A stretch of DNA of 64,000 nucleotides from Macrostomum hystrix. Its lineage: Eukaryota; Animalia; Platyhelminthes. Numbering within the stretch: position 1 is the stretch's first letter; every line of letters begins with the position of its first letter. The notes below the pieces were generated by a model. It saw only the letters and a program-made list of their open reading frames with translations. It did no database searches and had not been told where the DNA came from. The translations under genes and the position numbers were made by a program. Location: contig CATNEN010000001.1 in assembly GCA_950097015.1 (NCBI GenBank), forward strand, positions 27,491,946 to 27,555,945, in the 5' to 3' direction. Shown one piece after another: positions 542 through 61,505 of the stretch.

Positions 542-948
542 GAATAGTCTCAGCCACACAGGTAGTAGTCTCAGCCACACAGGTAGTAGTCTCAGCCACA
601 CAGGTAGTAGTCTCAGCCACACAGGTAGCAGTCTCAGCCACACAGGTAGTAGTCTCAGCCACACAGGTAGTAGTCTCATCCCCACAGGTAGTAGTCTCAG
701 CCACACAGGTAGCAGTCTCAGCCCCACAGGTAGTAGTCTCAGCCACACAGGTAGCAGTCTCAGCCACACAGGTAGCAGTCTCAGCCACACAGGTAGTAGT
801 CTCAGCCACACAGGTAGTAGTCTCAGCCACACAGGTAGTAGTCTCAGCCACACAGGTAGTAGTCTCAGCCACACAGGTAGTAGTCTCATCCCCACAGGTA
901 GTAGTCTCAGCCACACAGGTAGCAGTCTCAGCCACGCAGGTAGTACTC
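542..948 (-). repeat. 21-bp tandem array (GACTACTACCTGTGTGGCTGA), ~19 units, directly behind the stop of paralog 1
   Basis: Seen directly; the unit equals the terminal codons DYYLCG* of the gene family. Confidence 0.95.
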
Positions 949-2339
949 GTAGTCTCCAGCGATGCTGCTCAGGCTGGCAGGTGGGTAGGCGAACCTGAGC
1001 AGGTGGCACAGCTGCAGCTGAGCGGAGAAGATCACAGCCTGGCAGTCATCCCTGGCTCCGCAAAGAGCCGAGCACTCGATGATGGAGGTCGCATTTCTGA
1101 TCCAGAAAGTTTTTATCGTAGCCACCACCGTCAGACTGGGCTTTGGAGCTTTTGACACGATTTGCTTGCCTGAAACATGATCAAGCGAGTTATGCCCAAA
1201 CGAGTTCAGTCCATGGACTGGGTAGATGCCTTTTACTTTTACTTAATTGCAGGGGGGCCTGGGGCACTTGACGCACAAGCGCAGGAACGGCATGCCCCGA
1301 GGCCGGCGAACTAGGCAGGAGCCGCCCATCGCGCCATCTAGACCCCTGACACAGGCACCTCACACAGCCGCAAGCCAAGCGGGGAAGGGGGCGGCAGCCG
1401 GAGTGCCTGGACTTAGATGCCTGAAGGGTAGGGACGAGAGGACCAAGCCACGCGCGCAGACGGCTGGTGAAACCTCGCCGCTCAGAGCACGCATGGCTGG
1501 TGCACGGGCTCCACCCCCATACAACGCCTCACACCCGACCCTGCGCACAAACACAAACACAAACAAGCAGGCATGCTGACGGCAGGGGTTAAGCTATTTA
1601 AAATTAGCTTTGGTTGCACAGAATAAGGCGCATCTCCGCAAGTCACTACTTCGCAAACCTCCAACTATGCCCCGAAATAATCGTGACTTGGAGGGAGGAA
1701 CGAACCAGCGACCATTGGAAAGTGAGGCAGCGACATTAGCCGCTAAACCACTCACCCCCTTTGGGAGATGCCACACCCACCATAAATTACCCCAGCTAAT
1801 GCTGGCACCTATTTAACAGCTGCGTGAGCTGTAGGAATGCAGATTCAAGTGTCCTGCTAAAGGACAGAGATAGTTCCAGTAGAGTCAAGAATTGAAACCC
1901 CGACCTTCATGTGAGCGTTCCACAGCAACTAGCTGAGGAGTTTACCAGGGTAGGTCTGCGCAAAAACGGAGTTTCGCCAGCTGTTGCCGCACTTCTGTGT
2001 CGAGTTTCCTGAGCACAGCATGCTGCAGTCGGTCTCTTTGGCAGCTCCCTTGGAGCCGTAGGACTGGCCGCAGTAGCACTGCCTGCCGTACTGCAGGCTA
2101 AAGTACGGGAATCCGCCCAGCGAGCAGACATTGCTGCAGAACTCGTGGGTCATGCTGTTGCTTGTCACACCGTATAAGAGAGTAGCGCTGCGTCCGCCAA
2201 TGCTGCTCACACCGGCTAGTCCGTGGACGTCTATGGCGGATGTATCCACGAAGCAGCCGATGTAGGAGAACTCAGCCACCCTGGCAGCGGCGAGGACCGG
2301 CAGAACGAAGCAGAGAGTCGCGACCGGGGACGCGATCAT
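928..2339 (-). CDS. WSC-PAN secreted protein paralog 1 (intact, 211 aa; exons 2339-1946, 1169-928)
   Basis: Signal peptide MIASPVATLCFVLPVLAAAR. WSC motif YIGC..D...MTHEFC...C...GFPYFSLQYGRQCYCG...C...CSGNSTQKCG...NSVF. Phase-1 GT/AG intron. Exon 2 has the C-x3-C-x5-C-x-A-x2-F-x6-C-x-L PAN/apple-like pattern. Spliced length is 636 nt and in frame. Confidence 0.88.
1770..1920 (-). mobile_element. degenerate tRNA-derived SINE (family A) in the intron of paralog 1
   Basis: Reverse-complement similarity to the SINE at 14825-15136 (AAGGTCGGGGTTTCAATTC...CAGCTGTTAAATAGGTGCCAGCAT). Confidence 0.6.
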
Positions 2340-2392
2340 GTTTTGAAGATTTTTAGCGTGTCTGTGGATGCATGGCCATCTTTTGCTTAGCA

Positions 2393-2399
2393 TTTTATA
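2393..2399 (-). promoter_or_regulatory. TATA box candidate for paralog 1
   Basis: TATAAAA ~55 nt upstream of the ATG; paralogs 0 and 2 have TATAAA at a similar distance. Confidence 0.5.
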
Positions 2400-3961: not shown

Positions 3962-4570
3962 TCACCTCAAGGCCTGGGGATACACCACATTCTTCGTTAT
4001 TCCCCTTGGTGCAAAAATGAATAGGCCAGCTGGAGTTCCAACACGGGAGCAGGGGACATAAAGCTGCCCATGCGAGAAGCAAGGAGTCTCCAGGTTGATG
4101 CCAGCCACCTTCAGCGACTGTCCCTGAGCCTTGTTAATAGTCATCGCAAAGCACACTCTCACAGGGAACTGCAGTCGCTTGAACTGAAATGGCAGGTCCG
4201 TGGGGATAATTGGAATCCGGGGAACGAACACAGACTCTCCTCTGCCAGATCCAGTCATTATCGTGGCCTCAATCACGTGTGGGAAGAGCCGCCTGACTAT
4301 CAGTCTGGTGCCGTTACACAGCCTTGGCGCATTCAGGTTGCGGAGGAGCATAATTGGTGCCCCAACTTTCAGCTGCAAGTTGTGCGATGGAGTTCCAGGA
4401 GGATCTAGAGAGTTCAGAAACTCAACAGGATACTCCACAGCGGTGTCATCAGTCAACGTTGTATCAATTGACTTGTAGGTGAAAACTGCACCTGGCAACT
4501 CCTGAAGCAGTTGGTAGTTAATTTCGTTGGCGGCATCATTTCTAGGACACAGAATTGCCCTCTCTGACAG
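3962..4570 (-). pseudogene. Helitron RepHel C-terminal PIF1 helicase fragment
   Basis: Helicase motifs in ORF 3962..5167. The N-terminal part of that ORF is non-coding Helitron end and LTR sequence. Confidence 0.8.
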
Positions 4571-5100
4571 CCCGGGCTTCGGCGCCCGGGGAAGGGAGGG
4601 GGTGGCTGTAATAAAATTTGGCCCGCAGAGTGGCGGAGGGGAGTTGGGGTGGCTGTCCTCGGAAAACAAAAAGTGACTCACTTTGAGATGATGCAGCTTT
4701 GCTCTGGATTGAGTAGAGATGTTCAAAATTGACAGCATTGTTGGAAAACATGTAAAGTGTAAGTGGATCAAATTTGGAGAAAATCTGACAAAGTGGGGCG
4801 ACGATATGTCGAATTGAGTGATTTTTTGACGATTTTTGAGCAGTTTTTTGCACTTTTGAGCAGGAAGGAAATGATTTTTCGGGAATTTGAGTAGCCTATT
4901 GCACTCAGCGTAGGTGGTTTTAGGTATGTGCAAAGTTTGGTGCGATTTGGTTGAGCGGTTTCGGCGTCTATAAAGACAAAAGGTTGTACACACACACACA
5001 CACACACAGACAGACAGAGTTTTCACTTTTATATATATAGATACTAGCTTTTTTGCCCGTTGTTTTAGGGGCAGAAATTTAAAGCAAAGCAGTAAGCAAT

Positions 5101-5532
5101 TGTTGTGTCTCACGGCCCTACAGCCTTTGGGGAAGCTGCGACAGCCCAGGTCCCAGTCGGGTGCCACCCGTCCCGTCTCCCAGGGAATGGCAGAAAAGAG
5201 AGCGCAGGGTACTTACGGCAGACGACTGGCCCAGCGAGGCTTGAACTTGGATTGAATTGAAGGCTGTTTTAATTAATGAGCAATGCAGGGTGAACAGGCG
5301 GAACGGTTGAGACTCGGGTCTCTTCGCAGAGTCAATATATATTTAATTAACAAGTCTTCGCCCGGGGCTTACGCAAGCGCCGGCCCACGGGTGAAATGTA
5401 CATTTAACAATTAGGGGGTAGGCTGGGCGATCGATACATATGACTGGGGTGGGGCACGCTAGCCGACTGGCGGGGCAGGGAATGAGAAAGATATGAAAAT
5501 GATAGGGCAGAGGTGAGGGCTGCGTCACAACA
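5101..5532 (-). repeat. 3' LTR (432 bp)
   Basis: Direct repeat of 11507-11902; PPT at 5533-5545. Confidence 0.92.
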
Positions 5533-6653: not shown

Positions 6654-9600
6654 CTAGTACAGCACAGGGTTGCCGTAGCGCACCGGTGGATTTCCCCTTC
6701 CAGGCCGGAGTCTGCGCGGTGACGGCGGAGCAGGAATCTCCTGCAGTGGCGGCGCTGCACCTTGAATGGGTTCGTTCTGCGGCACTGGTGCTTCGTGCCC
6801 CGGCGGCGGCGGCACATAGACGAAGTCAGACTCGGCGTCATCTGACTCGGACTCATCCTGCTGAGGTGTCCCTCTAGCTACTTCACCCTGTACTTGGCGC
6901 GCCATCCGCCTTTGCCGTCTCTGTTTTGGAGCTTGCAGCTCAGGGGGCCGCTGTGGAATTTTTCTAAGATTGTTGTAATGGACTATTCTAGTTTTTCGAC
7001 TGTTCTGGTGGCGAATTTTGAAATTGACATCTGAGATTTTCTCTATGACCTCAGCCGGGCCTTTCCAATATTTGTGGAACTTGGCAACTTCGCTGGGCTG
7101 CAGGGCCGGCGAGTATTCAAGCACAATATCCCCAACATCTATGGTCGGACCTCGAACCCTGGAGTCGTAGTTGACTTTCTGCTTGCGCTGATATTGTTGC
7201 AGATTTTGCCTTACGTGCGAGTGCGCGTCTGCCAGCCTGTCACCCAGAGATAGCAGGTACTCAGGCGCATTAGCTGGCAGCGTTTCAGGCAAGTTCCCTA
7301 TGTCGACCGGAAGGCGCATCTCTTTCGCATACAGCATGTAATATGGGGTATACCCCGTGCCACGATGGACGCTGCTGCGATAGGCCAGAAGCGAGGGGCC
7401 AATCAAGTCCTCCCAGTCCGCCTCAGCCTCGCTCTGCCTGCACTTAATCATGTTTTTTAGCGTTTTGTTAAAGCTTTCCGCCTGGCCATCGGCCATGGGG
7501 TGATAAGACGTAGTTCGGCACTTTTTCACTGCCATCAGCTGACACAGCTGCTTCACGAGAAGTGATTCGAAGTTGGTGCCTTTGTCGGTTATCAGGAATT
7601 CTGGGCAGCCGAACTGGGCGATCCAGTTGTCAAAAATCGCCTTCGCCACGGTGCTCGCACGCTGATTCGAGAGCGCCACAGCGACCGGCCACTTCGTGAA
7701 TGAGTCCTGAATGGTCAGCACAAACCTGGAGCCATTCTTCGATCGAGGCAACGGGCCCACAATGTCACTCATGATGCGCTGGAATGGAGCTTCCGATACT
7801 ATCGGCTGCAGCGGCGCTCTGCCAGCTTTCCCCGGCTTGGCTCTGGCGCAATGCACGCAGCTCCGGCAATACTCCTCGATCTTTCTCGAGAGCCCTGGCC
7901 ACCAGAATCTACTCTTAACTTTCGCCTGAGTCTTCTTCACTCCAAGATGACCTCCAGCAACCCCGTCATGTAATTCACTGAAGACCCTCTGGAACAGACT
8001 CGGCGGCAAGACAATTTTTGGCTTCTCCGAGTCAGGTCCCTTGACGACCAAGACCTGCGCCTCCAGCCTGATCAGCTGGCGTTGAGACCATAGACATCTT
8101 TCCTCCCATGACATCACAGGCGGCGCAATCAGCTCAGAGTTACCATTGTGCACAAAACTGCGGATTACTTCCAGTTTGGACTCAGTTTCCTGGGCTGTTT
8201 GAATTTCCTCCCTGCCCAGTCCACTGCAAAGGACGGTATTAACGCCACGAGAGTCCGCCAGCGTACAGCTCGGACAGGTTTCGTGCCCGGAATGCTTCCT
8301 GTATTTGCGAGACAAAGAGTCCGCGTTGCCGTGGAGTTTCCCGGCTCGGTGTTCTATGGTGAACTCGTAATTTTGCAGCATCTGCAGCCAGCGAGCACAC
8401 TGGCCCTCTGTATCACGAAGATTCGTGAGCCACTGCAGCGCTTTGTGGTCAGACCTGATTATGAACTTTCTCCCAAGCAGGTAGTAACGGTATTTTTTTA
8501 CAAAATGCACGATTGCTAGTAACTCTAGGCGAGTGGTGCAGTAGTTCTTTTCACTGGGCTGGATCATCCGTGACCCATAGGCGATGACCTTCTCAGATCC
8601 ATCCGCCTGACGCTGTGACAGCACGGCGCCGATCCCGATCCTCGAGCTGGCATCCGTGTCAAGAATGAATTCGCCAGCGTCGGGCGAGAAATCTGGGAAT
8701 GCCATCACTCTAGGTGAACACAGGGCAGCCTTCAAGTTGTTGAACGATTCTTCCTGATCTTGGCCCCATTTAAACTCTGCTCCGCTCGCGGTGAGCCGGT
8801 ACAGCGGAGCGGCCATTTCGGAGAAATTTGGGATAAAGGCTTTGTAATACACGCACAATCCCAAGAACGATTGGACCTTCGCAGCACTGCAAGGCCTTGG
8901 CCAGTTTTGAATCTCCGCACACTTCTCGGGGTTCGCGGCAATTCCATCCTTTGAGATCACGTGACCTAGGAACTTGATCCGGTCGGCAAGGAAGACACAT
9001 TTCGCGGGCTTTAGCCTAATGTTAGCTGCCCGGAGACACTGAAAAACGTGCAAGAGGCGCTCAAAGTGCTGCCGGACTGTTATAGAAAAGACGACAATAT
9101 CGTCGAAATACACGAGGCACTCCTTCCAGTTCACCTCGGATAGCGCCATAGACATGAGTCTCGTGAATGTCGACGGGGCGTTCCTGAGCCCGAAGCTCAT
9201 GCAATTCCAGGCGAACTGTCCCCGATTCGGCACTACGAAGGCCGTCTTCAACTGGTCTTTTGGATCCAACGGGCACTGATGGTACCCGGAAGCCAGATCC
9301 ATGGTGGAGAAGATGCAGTTTCCCCCCAAGGCATCCAGCGTCTCGTCCATCCTGGGCGGAGGTAGCGGATCCGGCACAGTCACGCTGTTCAGCCGCCTGT
9401 AATCCAAGCACATTCGGAGGCTGCCATCCGGTTTCTTGACCGGCACCACCGGGCTCGACCAGGGTGACTGGCACGGGAATATGCGGCCTTCGGCCAGAAG
9501 CTGATCCACCTGTTTGTTGACTTCCTCTCGCCAGTGGGGCGGTAGCCGACGCAGCGGCTCACTTACCGGCTTTGCGCTGCCCGTGTCAATCTCGTGGGAC

Positions 9601-10556
9601 AAGAGGCCCGTCAGGCCAAGTTCAGAGCTGTCTTTGGCAAACACATCACGGTTTCTGGCGACAAGCTCCACGAACTCCCTCGACTCACCCTCAGTTAGGC
9701 CACACGACCCCCACTCCTTCACTTCGCTAAGGGGGTTCCACGAATCCTCCTCAGACTGCACAGTGTTCAGCTGCAGCTCTGCCGGCTGCTGCGCTGAGAT
9801 CGGCGAGAACCAACCGATGCGCGCCCCCTTTCTCATTGATAGGCTGGACTCGGACATGTTCATGATCCTGACTGACAGATGCCCGTCCTGACTCGGCATC
9901 TGCACGGACCGGGCCAGGAGGTGCTCACGCTCACCTTGCCGACAGGGCTCTACCATTCCTGGAAACTGGAAACCTTTCGCTCCTTTTCTCTGCAGGCGAA
10001 CCGGAATCAGCATCTCCTCTCCCATACTCATCCGGATATTCTGGCACAGTACAATACGACAAAGAAGCGGCCTCTCAGCGCACAGGCGAAAAGGATACAC
10101 GCTGGTTTCTGTCTGCAGGCAGTGTTTGGCAAAATCAATAATCATGCAATGCTTTAGAAAAAAATCTGTTCCAAGAATGCAAGGCTGTGAAATTCCGTCG
10201 ACAACCAGGAACTCGTGTGTGAAATTTGTCTCCCCAATTGAAAAATGAAATTGAATGTTTCCCTGAATTTCGATCGGCTCACCATTAGCAGTAAAAATAG
10301 AAAAATCTAATGTACTGTTTTGCAATTGACCTTTAATATTTTCAGCTTCTAAGAAACGATTGCTAAGCAAAGATACGTTGGACCCACTGTCCAGCAAGCA
10401 AGCTACCAGAGGCCCCGACTCGAACTTCGCGTCGATGTAGCCCAGCCCAGCTCTCCCAAGCACACTGTGGGTCTGGGTCGAGGGCCCTGGCGCTTTTCCA
10501 GTTACTGAAATCGGGGCCCGGGACGCTGGCCTAGCCGGGCCCCCATCCCGTTTCCC
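6654..10556 (-). CDS. pol: gypsy Pol polyprotein (protease, RT, RNase H, integrase), entered by a -1 frameshift
   Basis: Uninterrupted ORF with LLDSGS protease, LVYFDD RT, ILDTDAS RNase H, H-x6-H...CxxC integrase zinc finger, integrase core and KYWKGP (GPY/F-like) motif. Confidence 0.93.
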   Translation of the reverse strand, partial: GKRDGGPARPASRAPISVTGKAPGPSTQTHSVLGRAGLGYIDAKFESGPLVACLLDSGSNVSLLSNRFLEAENIKGQLQNSTLDFSIFTANGEPIEIQGNIQFHFSIGETNFTHEFLVVDGISQPCILGTDFFLKHCMIIDFAKHCLQTETSVYPFRLCAERPLLCRIVLCQNIRMSMGEEMLIPVRLQRKGAKGFQFPGMVEPCRQGEREHLLARSVQMPSQDGHLSVRIMNMSESSLSMRKGARIGWFSPISAQQPAELQLNTVQSEEDSWNPLSEVKEWGSCGLTEGESREFVELVARNRDVFAKDSSELGLTGLLSHEIDTGSAKPVSEPLRRLPPHWREEVNKQVDQLLAEGRIFPCQSPWSSPVVPVKKPDGSLRMCLDYRRLNSVTVPDPLPPPRMDETLDALGGNCIFSTMDLASGYHQCPLDPKDQLKTAFVVPNRGQFAWNCMSFGLRNAPSTFTRLMSMALSEVNWKECLVYFDDIVVFSITVRQHFERLLHVFQCLRAANIRLKPAKCVFLADRIKFLGHVISKDGIAANPEKCAEIQNWPRPCSAAKVQSFLGLCVYYKAFIPNFSEMAAPLYRLTASGAEFKWGQDQEESFNNLKAALCSPRVMAFPDFSPDAGEFILDTDASSRIGIGAVLSQRQADGSEKVIAYGSRMIQPSEKNYCTTRLELLAIVHFVKKYRYYLLGRKFIIRSDHKALQWLTNLRDTEGQCARWLQMLQNYEFTIEHRAGKLHGNADSLSRKYRKHSGHETCPSCTLADSRGVNTVLCSGLGREEIQTAQETESKLEVIRSFVHNGNSELIAPPVMSWEERCLWSQRQLIRLEAQVLVVKGPDSEKPKIVLPPSLFQRVFSELHDGVAGGHLGVKKTQAKVKSRFWWPGLSRKIEEYCRSCVHCARAKPGKAGRAPLQPIVSEAPFQRIMSDIVGPLPRSKNGSRFVLTIQDSFTKWPVAVALSNQRASTVAKAIFDNWIAQFGCPEFLITDKGTNFESLLVKQLCQLMAVKKCRTTSYHPMADGQAESFNKTLKNMIKCRQSEAEADWEDLIGPSLLAYRSSVHRGTGYTPYYMLYAKEMRLPVDIGNLPETLPANAPEYLLSLGDRLADAHSHVRQNLQQYQRKQKVNYDSRVRGPTIDVGDIVLEYSPALQPSEVAKFHKYWKGPAEVIEKISDVNFKIRHQNSRKTRIVHYNNLRKIPQRPPELQAPKQRRQRRMARQVQGEVARGTPQQDESESDDAESDFVYVPPPPGHEAPVPQNEPIQGAAPPLQEIPAPPSPRRLRPGRGNPPVRYGNPVLY

Positions 10557-11449
10557 TGCTGCCGAGCAGCCTGTTGATTCGGGCAACTGGCGCGGGTGTG
10601 ACCCGGCTGGCCACAGGCGTAGCATGCCACCCGATTCCTGCACTCCGCTGTCGAATGTCCAGCCTGAAGGCACCTTCCACAGCTCTTGGCCGACTGAGGC
10701 GCTGCTGCTGACTGTGGCTGTGGGCTCGGCCTCCCAGCCTGCGCAGACGCACCTCCTTGCTTCAGCTGCGCGATTTCCGCCTTCAAGCTAGCGATCTCCG
10801 CTGCCATGCGGGCTGCCTGACTTTCAGCCGCCGCGGCAGCCTGGTTGTTCACCACGTGAACTGACCGCTTTCCTTCCAGCAGCTTCATCGAAGCCAGAGT
10901 CTGGCGGACTCGCTGGATGGCGGCCTGTAGCGTGTCAGGGTCCTGCAGCAGCACGTTCTCAAGCACCCTGTCCGGCACCCGAATCCCCTTGAGGAAGCGG
11001 TCTTTCGCTAGCTCGTCCCTCTGCTCCACCGGCAGCGCCGGGTACGCCTTGCGCATTAGCTCCTTCAGAGCGTCAGCGTAGTCCTCAAGAGCCTCCCCGT
11101 CTCTCTGATTCCTGCTCTGAAATTCCGTCTTATAGTCCTAAGCCGTTCGATTTTGACTAAACCGAGCCTCCAGCTGTTCAACGAACTGGTCATAACCTAA
11201 CTCCTCGTCCAACTCCATGTTGGCCACTGCCTTGAAGGCCGTGCCGAAGTCAAGGAGACTCAACAGAGTCTGTTTCCTCTGATCCTCGGGGATCTGGGTG
11301 GCCTCGCAGTACGCATTAAATTGCTGCAGCCAGAGCGCAAAATCTTGACTGGGAACATATTTATTCGGACGAGGGATTCTCTGACCCACATGAAGCTGTT
11401 CCTGGATTCTCGCTGTCAACGCACCAATGAGATCGTCTAATCCGGCCAT
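10502..11449 (-). pseudogene. gag: gypsy Gag with an in-frame TAG at 11138-11140
   Basis: ORFs 11138..11461 and 10502..11056 share a frame and are joined by open sequence (RTA*DYKTEFQSRNQRDGEALEDYADAL). Two CCHC knuckles: CGRCLQAGHSTAEC and CYACGQPGHTRASC. Confidence 0.85.
10513..10556 (-). promoter_or_regulatory. -1 programmed ribosomal frameshift signal (gag-pol)
   Basis: Slippery heptamer G GGA AAC in the gag frame, followed by the stem GGGGCCCGG...CCGGGCCCC; pol is in the -1 frame. Confidence 0.8.
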
Positions 11450-12491: not shown

Positions 12492-13140
12492 TCACCTCAA
12501 GGCCTGGGGATACACCACATTCTTCGTTCTTCCCTTTGGTGCGAAAATGAATAGGCCAGCTGGAGTTCCAACACGGGAGCAGGCGACATAAAGCTGCCCA
12601 TGCGAGAAGCAAGGAGTCTCCAGGTTGATGCCAGCCACCTTCAGCGACTGTCCCTGAGCCTTGTTAATAGTCATCGCAAAGCACACTCTCACAGGGAACT
12701 GCAGTCGCTTGAACTGAAATGGCAGGTCCGTGGGGATAATTGGAATCCGGGGAACGAACACAGACTCTCCTCTGCCAGATCCAGTCATTATCGTGGCCTC
12801 AATCACGTGTGGGAAGAGCCGCCTGACTATCAGTATGGTGCCGTTACACAGCCTTGGCGCATTCAGGTTGCGGAGGAGCATAATTGGTGCCCCAACTTTC
12901 AGCTGCAAGTTGTGCGATGGAGTTCCAGGAGGATCTAGAGAGTTCAGAAACTCAACAGGATACTCCACAGCGGTGTCATCAGTCAACGTTGTATCAATTG
13001 ACTTGTAGGTGAAAACTGCACCTGGCAACTCCTGAAGCAGTTGGTAGTTAATTTCGTTGGCGGCATCATTTCTAGGACACAGAATTGCCCTCTCTGACAG
13101 CCAGTCAACGTCAGCATATCGAGAGAAATAGGCTGGCTGG
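12492..13140 (-). pseudogene. Helitron RepHel C-terminal PIF1 helicase fragment
   Basis: DWLSERAILCPRND...FSHGQLYVACSRVG...TKNVVYPQAL in ORF 12492..13187. Confidence 0.82.
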
Positions 13141-14824: not shown

Positions 14825-15136
14825 GAGGTTGTAGCCTAGTGGTTAGGGCGTCGGACTAACGACTTGAAGGTCGGGGGTTCGATTCCCGACTCCCCTGAAC
14901 AATTTGTGTCCTTTAGCAAGACACTTAACTCTGCATTGCTTCAGTTCACCCAGCTGTTAAATGGGTACCAGCATCAGCTGGGATAATTGAAGGTGGGTGT
15001 GGCGTCCCCCCAGTCCATGGACTGAACATCTGTACGCAGCCTTCAGATGTGCCGCGCAATAGCTGCGGCTGTGCTGTCGGCTGCACATCTGGCCCGATTG
15101 GGGCAGGTGTAATTAGTTATTAATTATCATTATTAA
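14825..15136 (+). mobile_element. tRNA-derived SINE family A (most complete copy)
   Basis: Pol III A box TAGCCTAGTGG and B box GGTTCGATTCC, CORE-like GTGTCCTTTAGCAAGACACTTAAC, AT-rich (TTA) tail; several dispersed copies in the window. Confidence 0.8.
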
Positions 15137-16082: not shown

Positions 16083-16189
16083 TGATTGGTACTGCTGCAG
16101 GATTTGAGATTTGGCCTCACTAACTGTTGCAACGTTAATTTTTAAAGGCATGCTAATGAACTTGACTAATAAAAAAGCCAGTTAGTATT

Positions 16190-46232: not shown

Positions 46233-46274
46233 TCTAACTGTAATCTAGGTAATCTAACCTTCTACCTCCGATTT

Positions 46275-48156: not shown

Positions 48157-48392
48157 TCAGCCACCCAGGTAGTAGTCTCAGCCACACAGGTAGTAGTCTC
48201 AGCCACACAGGTAGTAGTCTCAGGCACGCAGGTAGTAGTCTCAGCCACACAGGTAGTAGTCTCAGGCACGCAGGTAGTAGTCTCAGCCACACAGGTAGTA
48301 GTCTCAGCCACCCAGGTAGTAGTCCTCAGCCACACAGGTAGTAGTCTCAGCCACCCAGGTAGTAGTCTCAGCCACACAGGTAGTAGTCTCAG
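48157..48392 (-). repeat. 21-bp DYYLCG* array, ~11 units, no adjacent PAN exon
   Basis: Seen directly. Confidence 0.9.
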
Positions 48393-48589
48393 TTTAGTCA
48401 TCGAAAACTAAAATAGCAGCTACTTTCACTAGGTCGAAACTTCCCAACGTTGAGAGCTTTAGCAAGAGATTTCATAGCTGCTATGAAGGTAGTTGCTATT
48501 TAAGTTTTCGACGTTGTGAAGTTTCGACCTTGTGAAAAAATTGCTTTTCGGTGTTGTGAAATTTCGAGCTTGTGATAGCACCCCCCTAA

Positions 48590-48941
48590 CCGGGTAGGTC
48601 TGGGCGAACACGGAGCTCCAGCTGCTTCCTCCACAGATCTGTGACGAGTTTCCTGAGCAGGCCATGTTGCACTCGGACTCACTGGCCGCTCCGTAAAGCC
48701 AGAAGGACTTGCCACAAAAGCACTCACGGCTGCAATGCACACCGAAGTACGGGAATCCGCCAAGTGAGCAGACATTGCTGCAGAGCTCGTGCGACATGCT
48801 GGTGTTGCTGAACACACCTTGCGCGTCGCTGTAAGTGAATTCCCCAAGTTTAGTCACTCCCTGCAGCCCGTTCAAAGGCTCTGACGCTTAGAAAATCGTC
48901 ATTGAAGCAGCCGGTGTACGAGAACTGAGGCCACCCTGGCA
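48590..48941 (-). pseudogene. WSC-PAN paralog 4 remnant (WSC exon only; no signal peptide, no exon 2)
   Basis: WSC ORF 48459..48875, very similar to paralog 3 in its 3' half; frameshifts upstream; similarity stops at ...CTTGCCAGGGTGG. Confidence 0.75.
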
Positions 48942-49252: not shown

Positions 49253-49653
49253 ATGAGCTTACGCCTGACTCACACACTGCTGGCTGCGTGTGCCGTCATG
49301 ACCTGCGTGGCTGGCCGGCTGTTCCAGGTCTCCTACATCGGCTGCTACAAGGACAAGGGCCAGTAACAGAGACTTGGACGGGCTCACTGCTGTTGTAAAA
49401 GTTGGTGGTTTTTCCGTTTCCAGCCTCGGCATCAGAACTGGAAGCATGACGCCCCAGTTCTGCGCGGGCCTCTGCAGTCTCGGCGGCTTCCCGTACTTCG
49501 GGGTGCAGGCGGGGTTCCAGTGCTTCTGCGGCAGAGCCTACGGATCGCTGGGAGCAGTCAGCGAAGGCAACTGCAGCACGAGCTGCAACGGAGATGCGAG
49601 CCAAGTTTGTGGCGGTGGCCTCCGTAACTCGGTGTTCGCTCTCACCTACCCCA
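49253..49653 (+). pseudogene. WSC-PAN paralog 5 (exon 1 only; truncated in the intron by a minisatellite)
   Basis: MSLRLTHTLLAACAV...VSYIGCYKD, a 1-nt frameshift, then WSC ...MTPQFCAGLCSLGGFPYFGVQAGFQCFCG...NSVFALTYP; near-identical to paralog 7. Confidence 0.75.
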
Positions 49654-50168: not shown

Positions 50169-50772
50169 GCCAATAAGCCTGCATTCGTTTCTTGCCTTTC
50201 GGAGTGTCAGGCCCGTGCTGTACGATATGGCTTATGAGTCCTGCATAAGCGTGCTAATGCCTGGTTCGGTGATTACCTGTAGTTCACTCAATGGTAGTTG
50301 CAAAAGACCGTTTCTGCTACATTTCTTCTTATTTTTCCGTCGCTTCCCAATTGCTTAATAGACTAAAGTAATTCGAGTATGACATAAATTTGTCTTAATT
50401 CTTTGTATTAAGCGCACCAGGCCTACTTAGTTGTTTAAGAAGAATTTTCAGGAAAGAAAAATGCAATAATCATTGATGCGGATGAATTTGTATTTGCTGA
50501 AAAGTAAAGATATTGCATTTCAGCTATCAAAAACTAAAAAAACATATATTTAACATTCCGTGCATTGACAGTAGGTCGCATTTATCAAGTCAACTAGAAG
50601 GCATTGAGACCAGTAAAAAACTTTGAACTTGTAGGCCTACATGCGTTTCATCTGACAACAAATTAACTTCAGGCTTGATTGAATAAATTGAAGGTGAAAG
50701 GAAAAACGAATAAAAATTGATTGAATATTTGACGAATTGGCCATAGTTGTAGGCAGTAGTAACACGCAGTTA

Positions 50773-51769
50773 CTAGTCTCAGCCACACAGGTAGTAGTCT
50801 CAGCCACACAGGTAGTAGTCTCAGCCACACAGGTAGTAGTCTCAGCCACACAGGTAGTAGTCTCAGCCACACAGGTAGTAGTCTCAGCCACACAGGTAGT
50901 AGTCTCAGCCACACAGGTAGTAGTCTCAGCCCACACAGGTAGTAGTCTCAGCCACACAGGTAGTAGTCTCAGCCACACAGGTAGTAGTCTCGACCACACA
51001 GGTAGTAGTCTCAGCCACACAGGTAGTAGTCTCAGCCACACAGGTAGTAGTCTCAGCCACACAGGTAGTAGTCTCAGCCACACAGGTAGTAGTCTCAGCC
51101 ACACAGGTAGTAGTCTCAGCCACACAGGTAGTAGTCTCAGCCACACAGGTAGTAGTCTCAGCCACACAGGTAGTAGTCTCAGCCACACAGGTAGTAGTCT
51201 CAGCCACACAGGTAGTAGTCTCGACCACACAGGTAGTAGTCTCAGCCACACAGGTAGTAGTCTCAGCCACACAGGTAGTAGTCTCAGCCCCACAGGTAGT
51301 AGTCTCAGCCACACAGCTAGTAGTCTCAGCCACACAGATAGTAGTCTCAGTCACACATATAGTAGTCTCAGCCACACAGGTAGTAGTCTCAGCCACACAG
51401 CTAGTAGTCTCAGCCACACAGATAGTAGTCTCAGCCACACAGGTAGCAGTCTCAGTCACACAGGTAGTAGTCTCAGCCACACAGGTAGTATAGTCTCAGC
51501 CACACAGGTAGTAGTCTCAGCCACACAGGTAGTAGTCTCAGCCACACAGGTAGTAGTCTCAGCCACACAAGGTAGTAGTCTCAGCCACACAGGTAGTAGT
51601 CTCAGCCACACAGATAGTAGTCTCAGCCACACAGGTAGTAGTCTCAGCCACACAGGTAGTAGTCTCAGCCACACAGGTAGTAGTCTCAGCCACACAGATA
51701 GTAGTCTCAGCCACACAGGTAGTAGTCTCAGCCACACAGGTAGTAGTCTCAGCCACACAGGTAGTAGTC
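50773..51769 (-). repeat. 21-bp DYYLCG* array, ~47 units, behind the stop of paralog 6
   Basis: The first unit is the gene's own GAC TAC TAC CTG TGT GGC TGA. Confidence 0.95.
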
Positions 51770-52843
51770 TCCAGCAATGCCAGTTAGGCTAGGTGGTGGG
51801 TAGGCGAACCTGAGCAGGTAGCACTGTCCCTGCTGCTCAGAGAAAATCACAGCCTGACAGTCAGCGTCGGTTTGGCACTGGGCCACACACTCGATATTCA
51901 AAGTCACAGCTCTTGTCCAGAATGTGGTACTTGTGGCCACCACAGTCAGGCTTGGCGTTTGGGTCCTGGTAAAAGTGTTCCTTCCTGTAATTCAAGTTTT
52001 AGCGCTATGTATCTGCTCCTCTTAAAAGAGTTAGAAATCCTTGATTTCTAGAACGAGTATTTTTCGGTATTTGGGCAGTTTCACAATAGAAATTTTAGCG
52101 GCATAGCTGGCTATGCATCTCTTGTGCTTCATTATTCACTTCAGCTTAATTAAGAGCTACGCTCGTGCCCACCATTGATTTGTAGGGTATTTGTAGGGTA
52201 TTTGTAGGGTATTTGTAGGGTATCCGCTTGCAACTTTGCAGCATCGAACGTGCTCATACAACACACCCATCCTCCGCTATCGTTAACCAATAAATATATC
52301 GACCCTAAGCCTTAGAGACTGCAATTCTCGCTGCCAAATCACTTGGGCCTTCAAGAACTGGGCCTACAAGCGTTTTTCACGACTCAATTCTTGCTGATCT
52401 TATGGTCTTAAAAACCCTTAGTCTTTGGCATGTAGTTCATTCTCACCCAGGTAGGTCTGGGCGAACACGGAGTTCCGGTTGCTTGCTCCACAGATCTGTG
52501 ATGAGTTCCCCGAGCAGGCCATGTTGCAGTCGGACGCATTGGCAGCTCCGTAGAGCCAGTAGGACTTGCCGCAAAAGCACTCACGGCTGAACTGCACTCC
52601 GAAGTACGGAAATCCGCCAAGTGAGCAGACATTGCTGCAGAGCTCGTGCGACATGGTGTTGCTGCGCACGCCTTGTCTGTCGCAAGCGAATTCACCAAGT
52701 GTGCTCACTCCATCCAGCCCGTTCAAGGCTCTGACGCTACGCCAATCATCCTTGAAGCAGCCGACGTAGGAGAACTGAGCCACCCTGGCAGCAGCGACAG
52801 CCAGCAGAGCGCAGCAGACGGCGGAGGCCAAAGCGCTGATCAT
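51749..52843 (-). CDS. WSC-PAN paralog 6 (intact, 210 aa; exons 52843-52447, 51984-51749)
   Basis: MISALASAVCCALLAVAAARVAQFSYVGC..., complete WSC domain, phase-1 intron, exon 2 ...ECVAQCQTDADCQAVIFSEQQGQCYLLRFAYPPPSLTGIAGDYYLCG*. Spliced length is 633 nt and in frame; the ATG at 52852 is an alternative start. Confidence 0.88.
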
Positions 52844-53240
52844 TATCGCCATTACGAAGCTAACTATGGAGATAATATTAACCGTTGCTGTTTTAGCCTT
52901 CTTAAGTAACATACAACCTGAGCATAATCTCGCCGGACTTCTGTTTTACCTAAAGTAACATGTAAAATGCGATTTGCTGTCCAATTTATCACAATGGACT
53001 GGCCGAACCAATCAGAAAGCAGAACCTGCTTGCGAAGCCTTCTGAGCTAATTGTGAAGCATAAGGGGTGCTGACTGTTGTTTTAATACACCTAAATAGTC
53101 TGTAAATTTCCTCAAAACTGCCAAATTATTAAAAAAAAAAAACTTTTGGAATCTGAATAGTTGGCTCGAGGTATTTAAGTTCAATTCGGGTGTGCATGGA
53201 CATTTCAGAAAATTGATGTACGACAAACTCAAGAGATGCA

Positions 53241-53452
53241 TGAGCTGAAGTGACAGGTGAGCTGAAAGGACAGCTGAGCTTAAGGGACAGGTTAGCTTAA
53301 GGGACAGGTGAGCTCAAGGGACAGGTGAGCTGAAGGGACAGGTGAGCTTAAGGGACAGGTGAGCTGAAGTGACAGGTGAGCTGAAAGGACAGATGAGCTG
53401 AACTGACAGATGAGCTGAAGGGACAGGTTTGCTTAAGGGACAGGTGAGCTGA
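53241..53452. repeat. 17-bp GAGCTGAAGGGACAGGT minisatellite
   Basis: Seen directly; same family as 62218-62808 in the opposite orientation. Confidence 0.9.
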
Positions 53453-53954
53453 ATCGGGGCTGACTAGAATATTCCTGGTACGGGTCAGCGGTAGTTTTTA
53501 TTCAGATTTTGACAAACGGAAGCTCCGTAAATTGCAGCAGGGAAGATTTGAGCATTGTTAGGAGTGTCACACTGCATCCAAACTTTGAGTGGATGCACTG
53601 CCCAAACATTTTGACTTGTGAAGGAGACTGCTAATCGCAAGGAATAGCCCCCCTGCTGGGTGGCTTTGTAGAGTGACATGGATGGGAAATAATCAAACGA
53701 AAGTTGTCCCGAGGACAAAGTTTAAAACAGCTCCCTACACAGCTCAGTTCAGAGATGCCACAAGACTGCTTGACTAGATCGCAACAGGGCATTCAAAGTA
53801 GGGTAAAAAATTTGAATAGAACAGCGTCTTCAGTTTTTGCTTCACAGCAATTTGTCACAAGAAGAGGCTTAGAATGACATTCACTTTCTTGAATAAGCGT
53901 GCCTACTACTGCTATCAGCACCATCTAAACCTGAACGTTCTTTTCGCTGTGTCA

Positions 53955-54066
53955 ACCACATAGGTATAGTCTCAGCCATGCAGGTACGAGCTAGAAGTCA
54001 CACAGGTAGTAGTCTCAGCCACACACGTAGTAGTCTCAGCCACACAAGGTAGTAGTCTCAGCCACT
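53955..54066 (-). repeat. orphan degenerate 21-bp DYYLCG* units (~5)
   Basis: Same unit, with no parent gene visible upstream on the minus strand. Confidence 0.75.
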
Positions 54067-54744
54067 CAGAAGTCTTGGAGGATTGTGACATACAGATGAG
54101 TCTCTCGATGAGATGAGATCAAATGAGAACACCATTCAAAACACTAAGATACTTAAGAGACCTTGAGAGCACGTCTAGCCAGATTAATTAGTAGTATTGT
54201 ATGCTTAGTTCGCAGTTCAGTAATCAGGTGTAAGTTGGTTCGTTTGATTTTATAGATACCCATCCAAGTGACACAGCAAAGCAGTTCTCATTAGCCCTGC
54301 TGGAAAATGTGAAGAAAGACTTTCTTGGAAACTGTCAGCAGGCAAACTCATTTTTTGTCCCCTGGTAAAGTGGGCTCATTAAAAGGTGCACAGCAGATTT
54401 ATTGTTTTTTTTCACAAATGACAAAGGCATCACACAGGCCTCACCAAGTGACTAGGAGAGAGAGTTAAGAAACAATTAGAAGTTGGCTTCGTTGATGTCT
54501 TTAGGAAGGAAGATTAGCTTCAGGAGTCCAGAAGTGTCATTGTTTGACAATGGCTTCTGCGGGCAGCCTTCAAGTGCTGAAGACGCTTTGGAAAAGACAT
54601 GGGGCTTGCATGGGCTTATTGGTTGTGAGCAGTTGAGTATATATTACAAAGTCGGTTTCAGGCTTTGGCATCTTTAATGGGCTCTCTAAGGCCTGACGAA
54701 GGTCATTGCTCTCCTTTCCTGACGGCTGAAGTAGTCACTAAACA

Positions 54745-55465
54745 ATGAGCTTACGCCTGACTCACACACTGCTGGCTGCGTGTGCCGTCCTGGCCTGCGT
54801 GTCTGGCCGGCTGTTCCAGGTCTCCTACATCGGCTTGCTACAAGGACAAGGACAGTAACAGAGACTTGGACGGGCTCACTGCTGTTGTAAAACTTGGTGG
54901 TTTTTCCGTTTCCAGCCTCGGCATCAGAACTGGAAGCATGACGCCCCAGTTCTGCGCGGGCCTCTGCAGTCTCGGCGGCTTCCCGTACTTCGGGGTGCAG
55001 GCGGGGTAACCAGTGCTTCTGCGGCAGAGCCTACGGATCGCTGGGAGCAGTCAGCGAAGGCAACTGCAGCACGAGCTGCAACGGAGATGCAAGCCAAGTT
55101 TGTGGCGGTGGCCTCCGTAACTCGGTGTTTGCTCTCAACCTACCCCAGTGGGTTGTGCTCTGACTTGTATGGTCCCATGCTTCAACTTGAGCTGCAGTTG
55201 TAAAGATTGTTTTGAATTCTCCTTACAGAAAACAACTGCTTCTCGAAGTCATCCCGGCCTACTAAAACCGTTGTCGCTAGCAACGCCATTGTGTGGGCCA
55301 GCGCCTCCACAAGCAGACTGGGCTGCCTGGTCCAGTGCCAGCCCAGCTCCGACTGCCAGGCTGTGATCTTCATCTCAGCAGCAGCAGCTGTGCCACCTGC
55401 TCAGGTTCGCCTACCCACCCGCCAACCTGAGCAGTACACCTGGAGACTACTACCTGCGTGGCTGA
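54745..55465 (+). pseudogene. WSC-PAN paralog 7 (exons 54745-55147, 55229-55465; several 1-nt indels, possibly sequence errors)
   Basis: Both exons are present and the gene ends GGA GAC TAC TAC CTG CGT GGC TGA. Only about one degenerate extra unit follows; AATAAA at ~55549. Confidence 0.72.
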
Positions 55466-56049
55466 GACTGTGTACCTGTGTGCCCGTGTCTGACATAAAT
55501 AACTATGTGAGATTATTAAGGAAAAGCATGAAGTACATTCTATGATGTTAATAAAAATGCAAGCTCATATCAGTCCACTGAGTTACTTTGATTCAATTCT
55601 ACGAGTATATCATGTGAAGTGTTGACGATAATTAGTGTGCAGCAAAAGTCATTGAAATTTTCAAGTCCTCAACTTGGTACGAGTAAAGAATTCAAAATGG
55701 AAAAGCATGGAAAATGATGGTCAGTTTTGATTTCAGTTTCTAGCCACTATTAGCAGCCTTCAAGTTAAGCTGCCTCAGCCGGGACCAGGATGGTGAAATG
55801 CTGGCTGTCACACCTGATGGGTAATAATTACCATTGTGAGCTGAGCCCAGTGAGCTAAGCCTGGCACGGACTCAAAAGCTCGAAAGAAGGCTCCATCGCT
55901 CAGAGTCTGGGCCAAGACGGCTCTCTGTAGCTATGGTAGTATCATGGTAGGTACTGAGGGCTGAGAGCATTCTGGATGACCTATATTTATCCCTCCCTTC
56001 GTCTTATTTACGTCATCATTTTGATGATTGATTCAATTCTGGTTATGAT

Positions 56050-58026: not shown

Positions 58027-58038
58027 GACCAGCGTAAC

Positions 58039-58201
58039 TACGACCTACCTTCGAGGCTACCATTTTGACAAGTGACCAAGACTTCTACCTTCGAGGCTAC
58101 CATTTTGACAATTACAAGACTTACTACCTTTGAGGCTACCATTTTGACAATGACCAAGACTTACTACCCTCGAGGCTACCATTTTGACAATGACAAAGAC
58201 T
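58039..58201 (+). repeat. ~39-40-bp tandem repeat x4 downstream of paralog 8
   Basis: CTTACTACCTTCGAGGCTACCATTTTGACAATGACCAAGA; contains the terminal TACTACCTnCGAGGCTAC motif of the gene. Confidence 0.85.
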
Positions 58202-60462
58202 TTCGACAGGCGAGGATGCCGATAAAAATTTACTGAAGTGACAGACTGCGATTAAAAATTCATTTGTCATTCAATTTGTAAGGTTTGTTATAATTTAGTT
58301 CTTATTGTGGTAATATGAGTCAAATAAATTCTTCTTATGCTTCTCTGGTACTTTTTCAAAATAAAATCCACAAATTATTTACTGCATTCAAAAAAGTCTG
58401 GAATAGGTGTTAGTGTGCTCACGTGAAGGCCCCACGTGAGTCCTCCAGTATCCATTAAAGACTTCACATTCCCGCTGCCTCACATCACATCAATTAGCTA
58501 CTCTGGTTCAGGCTAAATAGAGTTTCATTTCCCCGCGTGGTCTGTTTTGCTTAGAAATGCGATTTCAATTGAGCGGCTAATGTAGCGGCAGCCCTATTAG
58601 TGCGCCGCAGGTCTACAAAGAAGCTCGGCAAATATGGGGAGCGAAAGTTCTAAGAACTGTTTTTAGTTCCCATTGGATTGTGTTTACTACCGCTGGTTCT
58701 GAAAATATTCAGCTACTAGTCTGGCATGCGTTTGTGCAATGGAGTTTTTTAGTTTTAAGGCGCACAATGTCCCGATTTCTTCTAGGAAACCACAAACTGG
58801 CCTGTGAGACATTGCGCACTGTAAGACGAAGATCGCCTATGAGAACAGAACATGTCCAAAATGTAGAGTCGAGGTAGAGAACGAAACTCCTATTCTCTTT
58901 GGATGCAATTGGTCCGTTTAGGTTCCAATTAAAAAATAAATTCATAGAGAAAGTGGCAGGTTCGAATTTCGAAAGCCTAACAGCTGATGATAAAACTGTG
59001 TATTTACAGTAGGACTACCAAGCCGTTTTGCCGCCCGTTTTTATACCAAGGGGGGGAATTTTTTTAAAAACACCATTTGAAAAGGTTGACAGACCAGTCG
59101 AGGGTGTCCTGTGGTTGAGCTGCGCCTAATAGTTAGGCTTGAACAGTGAAATTGGAGAAATTCGCGTCAGGGTGGTCCATAGTGGCCTAGTTCCACCTGT
59201 TGTAGCTCTTGAAGGTCTAGATAGATAAGAGAGATAGATCTAGGATAAAGGTCGGTGATGATGCAAGCACATTCGGGGTGACATGCTGATAAAGTTTGAA
59301 GGTCTGGAAAGGCCGCACTGAGGCGCAGTGCAAATTCGTGTATAGGGGTGTATGAAATACACTAGCTCTTATGGGAAAATCGGACCTTCGGCCAGAAACA
59401 TTGAATATCTCGACGGCCTGAAGAGCTGGCGACTTGTTTCTTGTTTCAGAAGATGCGCAACAAAAAGTTGGCCCGTGTTCTTGAGTTTCGTGTGCTTGCA
59501 TTGTTCCGTTCGGGTGCAGCAAAAGAATTGTCAGGGGGGGGAATTCCCCCCGATTGGTAGTTCAACTGTTAATGACACAGGAAAGCACAGAATTAACAGA
59601 AAGTTTTGTGGACTTCATAGAAAGCATGCTTAAAGCTAGGTAAAAAGGCCACTGCCCTGAGGCCCATAGTTAGAATGCTTGATTATAGTTGTGTTTTTTG
59701 TTTTCTTACATTTGATCGTAACTCACAGAAACACAAACAGCTTTTCTCCTTTCGTGAGAGAAGTGATTTCAGTCCCAGTTTTAATTTCCTCTTCCAAAAA
59801 TGAGAACATCAAGGGTACCAAAAACTCACAGCTCCTTCACCACAAACACCAAACGCTTGAATTTGATTTCCAGAAACACTCGTATCAGCATTACTGACTT
59901 TTTAATCATGCACTGCCAACGCACTATCGTGAGAACCTAGAAGCATAGAACGGAAGACCAACGGGACTATGATTTTTTTCCCGTCGAGCCTTTTTCCCAC
60001 ACATCTGTTTTCCTGCTAATGGCTAAACCAAAATAACAGGCAGATGCATTGATGTGCGCAGCGCTTAACTACTTGTAACAATGTGTGCGCGAAGACAAAA
60101 CCACGAACATGGAAAAAAAAACCTTAATATAAACTTCCATAGGGATATTGATTACAAGAAATTACACAAAAAAAAATTAACTTCTATAATAAACGATACC
60201 TTTAATTTGTACGATTGAAAATTTCAAACTTCTGCTGTGGCAAAATCGAGAAAAATGGTGCTTCGTTAAAGTACGTATAAGAAGTCTAATTACCTTCAGG
60301 TCGTGATTTAGTTTTTTATAAATATAGAAGAATCGAATTTAAGCGGAAAATTAATTTACACTGTGACTCGCTTCTTCACACATGACTAGCCTCTTTGTTG
60401 TTTTCAAATTATGAATCAGAGTCAACGTAGGAGTGACGTAGATCTTCTAAGCTTAAGTCTTA

Positions 60463-60770
60463 GGTAATAGTCTCAGCCACACAAGTATTAGTCTCAGCCA
60501 CACAAGGTAGTAGTCCTCAGCCACACAGGTAGTAGTCTCAGCCACACAAGTATTAGTCTCAGCCACACAGGTAGTAGGTCTCAGCCACACAGGTAGCAGT
60601 CCAGCCACACAGGTAGTAGTCTCAGCCACACAGGTAGTAGTCTCAGGCAACACAGGTAGTAGTCCTCAGCCTCGCAGGTAGTAGTCTCAGCCTCGCAGGT
60701 AGTAGTCTCAGCCTCGCAGGTAGTAGTCTCAGCCTCGCAGGTAGTAGTCTCAGCCTCGCAGGTAGTAGTC
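60463..60770 (-). repeat. 21-bp DYYL(R/C)G* array, ~14 units, behind the stop of paralog 9
   Basis: The proximal five units read CTGCGAGGCTGA like the gene end; distal units read CTGTGTGGCTGA. Confidence 0.92.
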
Positions 60771-61505
60771 TCCGGGAATGCCGCTCAGGCTGGCAGGCGG
60801 GTAGGCAAACCTGAGAAGATAACAGTGGCAGTTGAGTCTTAGAGAAGATCACAGCCTGACAGTGGCTCGGGCATGGCACTCGGTCGCACACTCCGATCCT
60901 GGATGTCGCATTTCTAGTCCAGAAGGTGGCGTGCGGTCGCCTCACAGTCAGGCTGGGCAACATGGTCCATGAAAGATGGATCTATCTAAAAAGCAATTTA
61001 TAGAATCAGTTTTCCTTGTTACACCAAGGAATCGTGCATTCATATGTACGAGTATCAGCTCACGGAATAATACAAAGTGAAGCATTGTATTGCTTGAGAT
61101 TCAGCTCACCCTGGATAGGTCTGAGCGAACACGGAATTACGGGCGCTGCTTCCGCACTTCTGTGTTTGATTTTCCCGAGCAGGCCCAGTTGCAATCGGAC
61201 TCACATCGCCGCTCCATAGAGCCCATAGGACAGGCCGCAAAGCACTGATAGCTGTATTGTAGACCGAAGTACGGAAAGCCGCCAAGAGAGCAGATTTTGC
61301 TGCAGAGCTCGCCGCGTCATGCTGCTGTACACTCCGGCGCTGTCGCTGTGAGCGAATTCCCGAGCCTGCTCACCCGTGCAGCCCGTTCAGATCTCTGACG
61401 CTTGAGGAGTTATCGATGAAGCAGCCGATGTAGGAGAACTGAGCGACCCTGGCAGCTGCGATGGGTCAGGCAGCAGATGGTGGCAAGCAGAACTCTGATC
61501 ATCAT
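60750..61505 (-). pseudogene. WSC-PAN paralog 9 (exons ~61505-61110, ~60985-60750; multiple 1-nt indels)
   Basis: MMIRVLLATICCL..ARVAQFSYIGCFIDNSSSVRDLNG...CSLGGFPYFGLQYSYQCFCG...; exon 2 FWTRNATS...CQAVIFSK...GDYYLRG*. Confidence 0.72.

Follow-up and report, generated by a model that had tools for sequence, protein, structure and literature searches.

A 21-bp minisatellite made of the stop-codon end of WSC-PAN genes in Macrostomum hystrix

The last 64 kb of contig C1 (positions 27,491,946-27,555,945) in the 220-Mb, 42-contig genome assembly of the flatworm Macrostomum hystrix, called the window below, carries a group of small genes with WSC and PAN domains. Several of these genes are followed by a minisatellite whose 21-bp unit is the end of the gene itself, that is, its last six codons and its stop codon. 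On the minus strand the unit reads GAC TAC TAC CTG TGT GGC TGA. Exons were searched one by one, using stop-to-stop open reading frames (ORFs), tblastn and Pfam, and trees were built per exon. Twenty additional family loci were retrieved from beyond the window, and the portion of the cluster on contig C15 was sampled. Paralogs in the window are labelled P1-P9, and labels from L031 to L059 denote loci elsewhere (on contigs C1, C15, C7 and C39).

Genes and arrays in the window

The genes have two small exons, the first encoding a signal-like segment and a WSC domain (PF01822, E ~1e-16) and the second a PAN/Apple domain (PF00024), as found by Pfam on the exons taken separately. In most copies the exons are joined by a phase-1 intron with a GTGAGT-type donor. 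The genes are predicted to encode secreted proteins. Their nearest database proteins are WSC-domain proteins of M. lignano, 206-219 aa long and 50-55% identical. The M. hystrix genes close with D-Y-Y-L-R-G-stop, which is strongly conserved. The M. lignano homologs (~209 aa) end in GDYFVRG, GDFFLRG, GDFFARG or GEFYARG, which indicates that the stop codon marks the true protein end and that the motif is old. Structure prediction for a M. lignano homolog gave an unusable model, with a mean predicted local distance difference test score of 37.5 (eight aligned sequences). The gene copies are as follows, in window coordinates.

928-1169 (minus): P1 exon 2, PAN, ending EYYLRG; TGA 928-930; acceptor 1169 (Pfam PAN_1)
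1946-2339 (minus): P1 exon 1, signal peptide and WSC (Pfam WSC, E 2e-16); ATG 2339; phase-1 donor after 1946
18626-18844 (minus): P2 PAN exon, ending DYYLHG; TGA 18626-18628; expected acceptor out of phase
18943-19336 (minus): P2 exon 1, signal peptide and WSC (Pfam WSC)
46275-46510 (minus): P3 PAN exon, ending DFYLRG; TAG stop 46275-46277 (ORF and sequence reading)
46588-46960 (minus): P3 exon 1, WSC; no in-frame start codon found (Pfam)
48462-48887 (minus): P4, WSC exon only (Pfam WSC); PAN exon missing, no PAN match
49302-49650 (plus): P5, WSC exon fragment (Pfam WSC), then an unrelated 16-bp array; no PAN exon
51749-51984 (minus): P6 exon 2, PAN, ending DYYLCG; TGA 51749-51751 (Pfam)
52447-52852 (minus): P6 exon 1, signal peptide and WSC (Pfam WSC, E 1e-16)
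54761-55465 (plus): P7, WSC and PAN exons, ending DYYLRG; TGA 55463-55465; frameshifted here, intact on C15
57327-57982 (plus): P8, WSC and PAN exons; TAC at the stop position (tblastn and Pfam)
60750-61316 (minus): P9, partial WSC exon and PAN exon, ending DYYLRG (with CGA); the frameshifts are assembly errors

In the P2 intron (18845-18943) the expected TTTTTCAG acceptor is out of phase with the phase-1 donor, and the frame is kept only by a 42-45-nt intron that uses an upstream acceptor. This gene, which precedes the array of 116 units, may therefore be defective or may carry a 1-nt assembly error.

Tandem repeats make up 27% of the window, which suggests a genome generally prone to minisatellites. 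Seven 21-bp arrays are called by Tandem Repeats Finder (TRF), all on the minus strand, with 88-96% matches and 5.6-116.7 copies. They are listed here together with two related features on the plus strand, behind P7 and P8.

550-948 (minus): array 1, 19 units, all of 21 nt and in frame; the first is the end of the coding DNA sequence (CDS), 928-948; a decayed partial unit lies at the distal end (TRF 545-945, 19.1 copies)
16191-18646 (minus): array 2, ~116 units, some of 22 or 25 nt; units 16-45 and 52-83 are two copies of a ~30-unit block (TRF 16179-18648, 116.7 copies)
46037-46234 (minus): array 3, ~9 units, behind ~40 nt of decayed, repeat-like spacer after the stop (TRF 46059-46235, 8.2 copies)
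48157-48388 (minus): array 4, 11 units straight after intron-like sequence, orphaned from its PAN exon (TRF 48157-48392, 11.2 copies)
50779-51769 (minus): array 6, 47 units, the first nine in register, then 22- and 23-nt units (TRF 50763-51771, 47.9 copies)
53952-54069 (minus): orphan array, ~5 decaying units, no upstream WSC or PAN exon (TRF 53952-54069, 5.6 copies)
55466-55490 (plus): decayed unit after the P7 TGA
58045-58202 (plus): P8 array, 40 bp x 4, each unit combining a derived 21-mer with ~19 nt of downstream flank
60473-60770 (minus): array 9, 14 units, the first five with the gene's private CGA codon (TRF 60462-60772, 14.6 copies)

An initial annotation of the window, made from the letters alone, had equated the minisatellite with the end of the genes' own CDS. 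This is what we find: in P1, P2, P6 and P9 the last six codons and the TGA form the first unit of the array. The two departures it described are also present, since P3 has a TAG stop and a decayed spacer of ~40 nt before its array begins, a layout that recurs behind a sister paralog on C15 (L059), and P7 has only one unit and one decayed unit. Missing from that annotation were the array of P4, which has no PAN exon, the orphan array at 53952-54069 and the 40-bp array of P8. The last of these arose independently from the same gene end, as a second repeat of another period.

Contig C15 ends in a stretch that overlaps the window, in inverted orientation, from ~35.7 kb on (window 35700-64000 versus C15 loci L051 and L052). 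Single-base homopolymer indels, more frequent as the contig end is approached, are the only differences between the two copies, and C1 and C15 should accordingly be merged. P6 with its array is 99.6% identical on the two contigs and has 47 units in both. For P9 all differences amount to ~23 single-base indels in short homopolymers; on C15 its PAN exon is intact, 13 of its 14 units are 21 nt long and the 22-nt units of the window are absent. Because the C15 copy is intact and differs only in this way, the frameshifts and 22-nt units of P9 in the window are assembly errors, and the frameshifts of P7 and P8 are probably errors too. The position of the window at a contig end, with homopolymer errors relative to its overlapping partner, might raise the suspicion that the arrays or their lengths are themselves artefacts of assembly. 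We regard this as extremely improbable, since both contigs give the same counts (47 units for P6, 14 for P9), the arrays have internal higher-order structure and the arrangement recurs at more than 15 loci.

The wider family and the ancestral gene end

A genome search with the PAN exon gave at least 124 matches, which fall mainly on C1 between 20.9 and 27.55 Mb and on C15. No array follows at least 13 close paralogs between 24.8 and 26.5 Mb on C1, which have the terminal 21 nt once, mostly as GAC TAC TAC CTG CGT GGC TGA. Arrays are also absent from a diverged sub-family at 27.2 Mb (three genes, ending DLYVRG or ALYVRG) and from one paralog on C39. Since array-less paralogs carry the 21 nt once, the single copy is, as judged from sequence comparison, the ancestral gene end.

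Paralogs at C1 26.88-27.49 Mb are followed by arrays of 2, 8, 11, 20, 71, 73, 115 and 127 units, each beginning 21 nt before the end of the stop codon. The module had been described as family-wide and variable in length. Its length does vary, from about 1 to ~127 units, but arrays occur only in one sub-group of the family and in one neighbourhood of ~0.7 Mb. Among the 17 arrays listed for C1, those of the window included, 12 directly adjoin a PAN stop codon (with their first base 21 nt before its end), one is offset and four are orphans. Among the two-unit matches listed for the genome, all 185 on the reverse strand lie on C1 and all 88 outside C1 are forward, a strand pattern that points to a single cluster of ~0.7 Mb continuing into the inverted contig C15.

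More distant relatives of the array are also found. Behind a C15 paralog (C15:2048367-2048591; locus L058, C15:2048520-2048800) lies a drifted array whose 21-bp consensus has five changes and keeps the TGA. A distant paralog on C7 (L057, C7:8221160-8221420) has a 15-bp array that shares the cores TGAG and TACCTG.

A separate 17-bp array, with a tandem junction resembling a 5' splice donor (CAGGTGAGC), recurs beside orphan 21-bp arrays; it is found at 53241-53453 and 62217-62808 in the window and at ~5100-5163 of L032. Donor-like AGGTA or AGGTG motifs are weakly enriched among the repeat units of the window once the 21-mer family is counted once.

Coding status and turnover of the units

The arrays had been said to stay in register with the gene. 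This is true of P1, in which all 19 units are in frame, and elsewhere of L037 (73/73 units) and L032 (20/20). It does not hold for P6 beyond the first nine units or for P2 beyond the first two, and the irregularity of P9 is the assembly error described above; among the other loci, frame is lost in L031 after two units and in L034 after four. The 22- and 23-nt units of P6 are present in both C1 and C15, and frame-shifting units of 22, 23 and 25 nt are propagated as higher-order blocks. Array 2 contains variant units of 22 and 25 nt and a block that occurs twice, so that these variants are real and have spread by unequal exchange.

Two features of the unit variants had been noted from the sequence, namely that they centre on the codon for C, R, H or W and that the TGA is kept. 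Both stand. TGA is present in ~98.7% of ~690 units; of the nine units that lack it, seven have TAA instead and belong to a single orphan array. The most variable site (19%) is the C/T of CGT/TGT, which lies in the CpG of the ancestral CGT. In 11 of 14 gene-linked arrays the coding unit encodes Arg, by CGT or CGA, and the fifth codon across the array units is TGT in 545, CGT in 123 and CAT in six. The next commonest variants add in-frame stops: 9C>G creates TAG, in up to 40% of the units of one array, and 6C>A creates TAA.

These observations bear on the proposal that the array is a ladder of UGA read-through or selenocysteine recoding sites giving (DYYLCGX)n tails. Recoding of UGA, as in selenoproteins with multiple UGA codons, and programmed read-through of stop codons are known systems, and they share with the arrays a repeated in-frame UGA behind an ORF. 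The intact arrays of P1, L037 and L032, with a TGA in every 21-nt unit, fit such a ladder, as does the rarity of TGA mutation. A search for selenocysteine insertion sequence (SECIS) families on both strands of the 64-kb window, at the gathering score and at E up to 5, yielded no match. Unlike the known systems, moreover, the arrays keep no coding potential past the stop: frame is gone after 2-9 units in P2, P6, L031 and L034, units with extra TAA or TAG stops are abundant, and the selected Arg codon has decayed to TGT. Read-through at every seventh codon would in any case be expected to yield vanishingly little product. We therefore give the ladder hardly any credence. The best reading is that the array copies are non-coding, a 'stop-codon mirage' minisatellite (mirages are described below), because Arg is kept in the coding copy but has mostly become TGT in the copies, extra stops have accrued, frame is lost and no SECIS is found.

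The arrays evolve together to a degree that their genes do not. Of 16 arrays, 15 agree at every position of the consensus unit, and the sixteenth differs only at the CpG site. Over the WSC exon and the 5' half of the PAN exon, the genes of those arrays have a median distance at 4-fold degenerate sites of 0.55, which is saturated and becomes ~1 substitution per site under the Jukes-Cantor correction. With that much change, independent neutral drift would alter ~10 of the 21 consensus positions in each array. Compound variants are common to different loci as well. L031 and L037, separated by 600 kb and with deeply diverged genes, both have a two-site variant (2T+3T), in ~10 and 13 units respectively, and a 25-nt unit (a 4-nt insertion plus 18T) is common to L033 and L034, neighbours whose genes are also deeply diverged.

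Array length and layout nonetheless turn over quickly. The twin genes L036 and L037 have 0 differences at 53 4-fold sites and identical flanks, yet have 8 and 73 units. L031 and L033 differ at 3% of 4-fold sites and have 127 and 115 units, with wholly different internal maps. Higher-order blocks, such as the ~30-unit duplication in array 2, and decayed partial units at the distal ends are signatures of unequal exchange. That fast turnover coexists with common complex variants argues that array sequence moves between paralogs; persisting ancestral polymorphism would look unlike these data.

Exchange also involves the coding copy. Private coding variants have been copied into neighbouring units, in P9 (CGA, five units) and in L043a, a two-unit array (CGA-GCC, two units), which shows that the coding copy is still being duplicated. 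In the reverse sense, array-type codons are found in the coding copies of P6 (TGT, Cys) and P2 (CAT, His).

The 3' ends of the genes are unusually similar. Among the PAN exons of 26 paralogs (from the window and L031-L052), 4-fold divergence is 0.19-0.27 in the last ~35 codons versus 0.50-0.56 elsewhere, and the last 80-100 nt are 90-98% identical between paralogs that are otherwise 55-70% identical. For the 3' half of the PAN exon, divergence is 0.25 between two array-bearing genes, 0.27 between an array-bearing and an array-less gene and 0.19 between two array-less genes. Conversion tracts spreading from the arrays into the gene end are thereby ruled out as the cause, as array-less pairs are equally low. 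Because the reduction is equal in all pair classes, low 3' divergence is a property of the family and not a by-product of the arrays.

The initial annotation had also considered the arrays as a recombination substrate, and this holds in part: the common consensus, the compound and indel variants and the array-type codons in P6 and P2 agree with it, and the low 3' divergence is not explained by it. In its strong form the proposal is that arrays are recombination hotspots that duplicate, delete and invert modules of gene plus array and swap C-termini, and that they are retained for doing so. In addition to the features just named, in deeply diverged paralogs, it could account for paralogs in both orientations, orphan arrays, the copy without a PAN exon and the 8 and 73 units of the L036/L037 twins. 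However, there is a tandem cluster of array-less paralogs that is just as large, which means that the family can expand in the absence of arrays; synonymous divergence in the 3' half of the PAN exon is low to the same degree with or without arrays; and no breakpoint within an array has been demonstrated. On balance we consider the strong form unlikely.

A third proposal takes the array for a functional element of the 3' untranslated region (UTR), in which the number of units would set mRNA stability, localisation or translation for each paralog, perhaps through a repeated site for a protein or small RNA. The uniformity of the unit across arrays despite gene divergence agrees with this, as do the little-varying TGAG and TACCTG cores, which survive in drifted arrays, and the predominance of TGT over CAT. 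The unit core also pairs with nucleotides 3-11 of the genome's let-7 candidates. Yet close paralogs have anything from 0-1 to 127 units and near-identical twins have 8 and 73, many paralogs have no array at all and gene-less orphan arrays persist. An RNA fold of eight units is only modestly more stable than shuffled sequences (z = -2.0), and the pairing with let-7 breaks at seed position 2. We hold such a 3' UTR function to be rather improbable. It is similarly doubtful that the unit is a working RNA or DNA element of any kind, whether a tunable 3' UTR site or a recombination motif, with its uniformity, TGAG...TACCTG core and TGT bias due to selection. If it were, array length would set the expression or turnover of each paralog in a fast-evolving family of secreted lectins.

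The let-7 candidates are two let-7-like hairpins, at C39:429395-429473 (minus) and C1:16096876-16096990 (plus), with bit scores of 44 and 40, below the Rfam cut-off of 53.5; both have a 5' arm beginning UGAGGUAGUG. As a canonical let-7 target the unit is rejected, since it places G opposite G at nucleotide 2 and so has no 2-7 or 2-8 seed match.

Interpretation, related systems and neighbouring features

We think it probable that the arrays are a near-neutral, non-coding minisatellite that grew from the gene's own stop-codon end and evolves in concert. Under this interpretation the terminal 21 bp (six codons and TGA) would have been duplicated in tandem in one sub-group of a large tandem family. 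As the duplicate brings its own stop codon, translation would still end at the first copy and the protein would be unchanged, for which the M. lignano protein ends offer indirect support, so that the duplication could be tolerated. The duplicate would then behave as an ordinary minisatellite, presumably within the 3' UTR, with unequal exchange and slippage resizing it (from 1 to ~127 units), spreading blocks of variants and leaving decayed units at the distal edge. Copies past the stop would be untranslated and their frame not kept; their Arg codon would be lost by CpG decay (CGT to TGT) and extra stops would accrue. No other near-identical stretches in the cluster come close to the arrays in length. 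We infer that ectopic conversion or unequal crossing-over exchanges them between paralogs, which would maintain one consensus even though the genes are saturated at synonymous sites. As side effects, an array might sometimes overwrite the last codons of its gene (putting Cys in P6 and His in P2 in place of Arg) or be orphaned upon loss of the PAN exon (P4).

Several observations sit less easily with a near-neutral repeat of this kind. Symmetric CpG decay predicts equal numbers of TGT and CAT, whereas the ratio is ~90:1, so that TGT units either have common ancestry or are favoured. Even the drifted C15 array and the 15-bp array on C7 retain the TGAGAC and TACCTG cores. Variation of the TGA is low, which strict neutrality does not predict: three variant-by-array events affect the triplet, compared with 13 for the average triplet, and just 2.6% of random triplets show so few (nominal p ~0.03, for a hypothesis drawn from the same data on which it was tested). 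Positions 1, 4, 8 and 10 are as invariant as the TGA, and we take the low TGA variation as suggestive only. A scan for AATAAA and ATTAAA downstream of the arrays gave no consistent poly(A) signal. The number of origins also bears on the scheme. In the exon trees 11 array-less paralogs form one well-supported clade, the array label requires 3-4 changes on the best trees with only one forced by well-supported branches, and monophyly of array bearers has p = 0.075 in the approximately unbiased test; a single origin of the arrays is neither shown nor rejected. A regulatory or recombinational role of the arrays is conceivable but unlikely.

Classical variable number tandem repeats (VNTRs) in 3' UTRs and 3' flanks have units of 10-60 bp, big length differences, higher-order blocks and degenerate edges, often with no demonstrated function. 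To our knowledge the seed sequence of most VNTRs is not known, and the source of a minisatellite can rarely be identified. The arrays described here resemble VNTRs in period, length differences, blocks and degenerate edge units; they differ in that the seed is the conserved last 21 nt of a gene, still single-copy in sister paralogs.

The closest described class is that of the amphioxus 'mirage' minisatellites of Adh3 and the globins BflGb6 and BflGb9, which are duplications of exon-intron boundaries with units of 10-160 bp in few copies (PMC3087553). Mirages show length instability and concerted evolution within a cluster, their edge units escape homogenisation and the gene product is apparently unaffected (PMC3087553). 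As in the mirages, the unit here spans a working boundary of the gene and the genuine copy comes first or last in the array, and length instability, concerted evolution and edge units that escape homogenisation are again found (PMC3087553). The boundary here, by contrast, is the stop codon (between CDS and 3' UTR), and the arrays reach ~127 units, lie behind many paralogs and are homogenised between loci. The stop-codon arrays are thus the stop-codon counterpart of the mirage, a variant of a described type. Our literature search found no described family of stop-codon minisatellites.

The sea-urchin Sp185/333 (SpTransformer) genes offer a looser likeness. They are tandem genes for secreted proteins whose flanking short repeats are thought to promote instability, duplication and deletion (PMC5103432). 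Both families, then, are tandem sets of small secreted-protein genes with repeats beside each gene; the Sp185/333 repeats are simple microsatellites rather than derivatives of a coding end, and the claims of instability rest on that system's own data (PMC5103432).

Sister genes of the M. hystrix family still have the seed as a single copy under selection, and arrays of every size from 2 to ~127 units lie beside it, so that one gene family displays how a minisatellite is born, grows, drifts, decays and is orphaned. A simple filter is suggested, in which a tandem duplication that includes the stop codon spares the protein and is hence tolerated. Long arrays behind diverged paralogs, it appears, can evolve in concert and alter the last codons of the protein. 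If unit number affected expression, the paralogs would form a natural dosage series.

The window has the following further features.

3965-5212 (minus) and 12495-13187 (minus): ORFs with a Pif1 helicase 2B domain, one in each of two ~2-kb direct repeats that flank the gag-pol element
6657-11137 (minus): Ty3/gypsy-type gag-pol element, with Pfam RVT_1, RNase H, integrase and zinc knuckle
24946-27061: unrelated minisatellite, 22 bp x ~94
27682-33258: unrelated minisatellite, 30 bp x ~187 (5.6 kb)
14825-14894 (plus): tRNA-like match, 27.6 bits, just below the Rfam gathering score of 29

Both of the unrelated minisatellites are huge.

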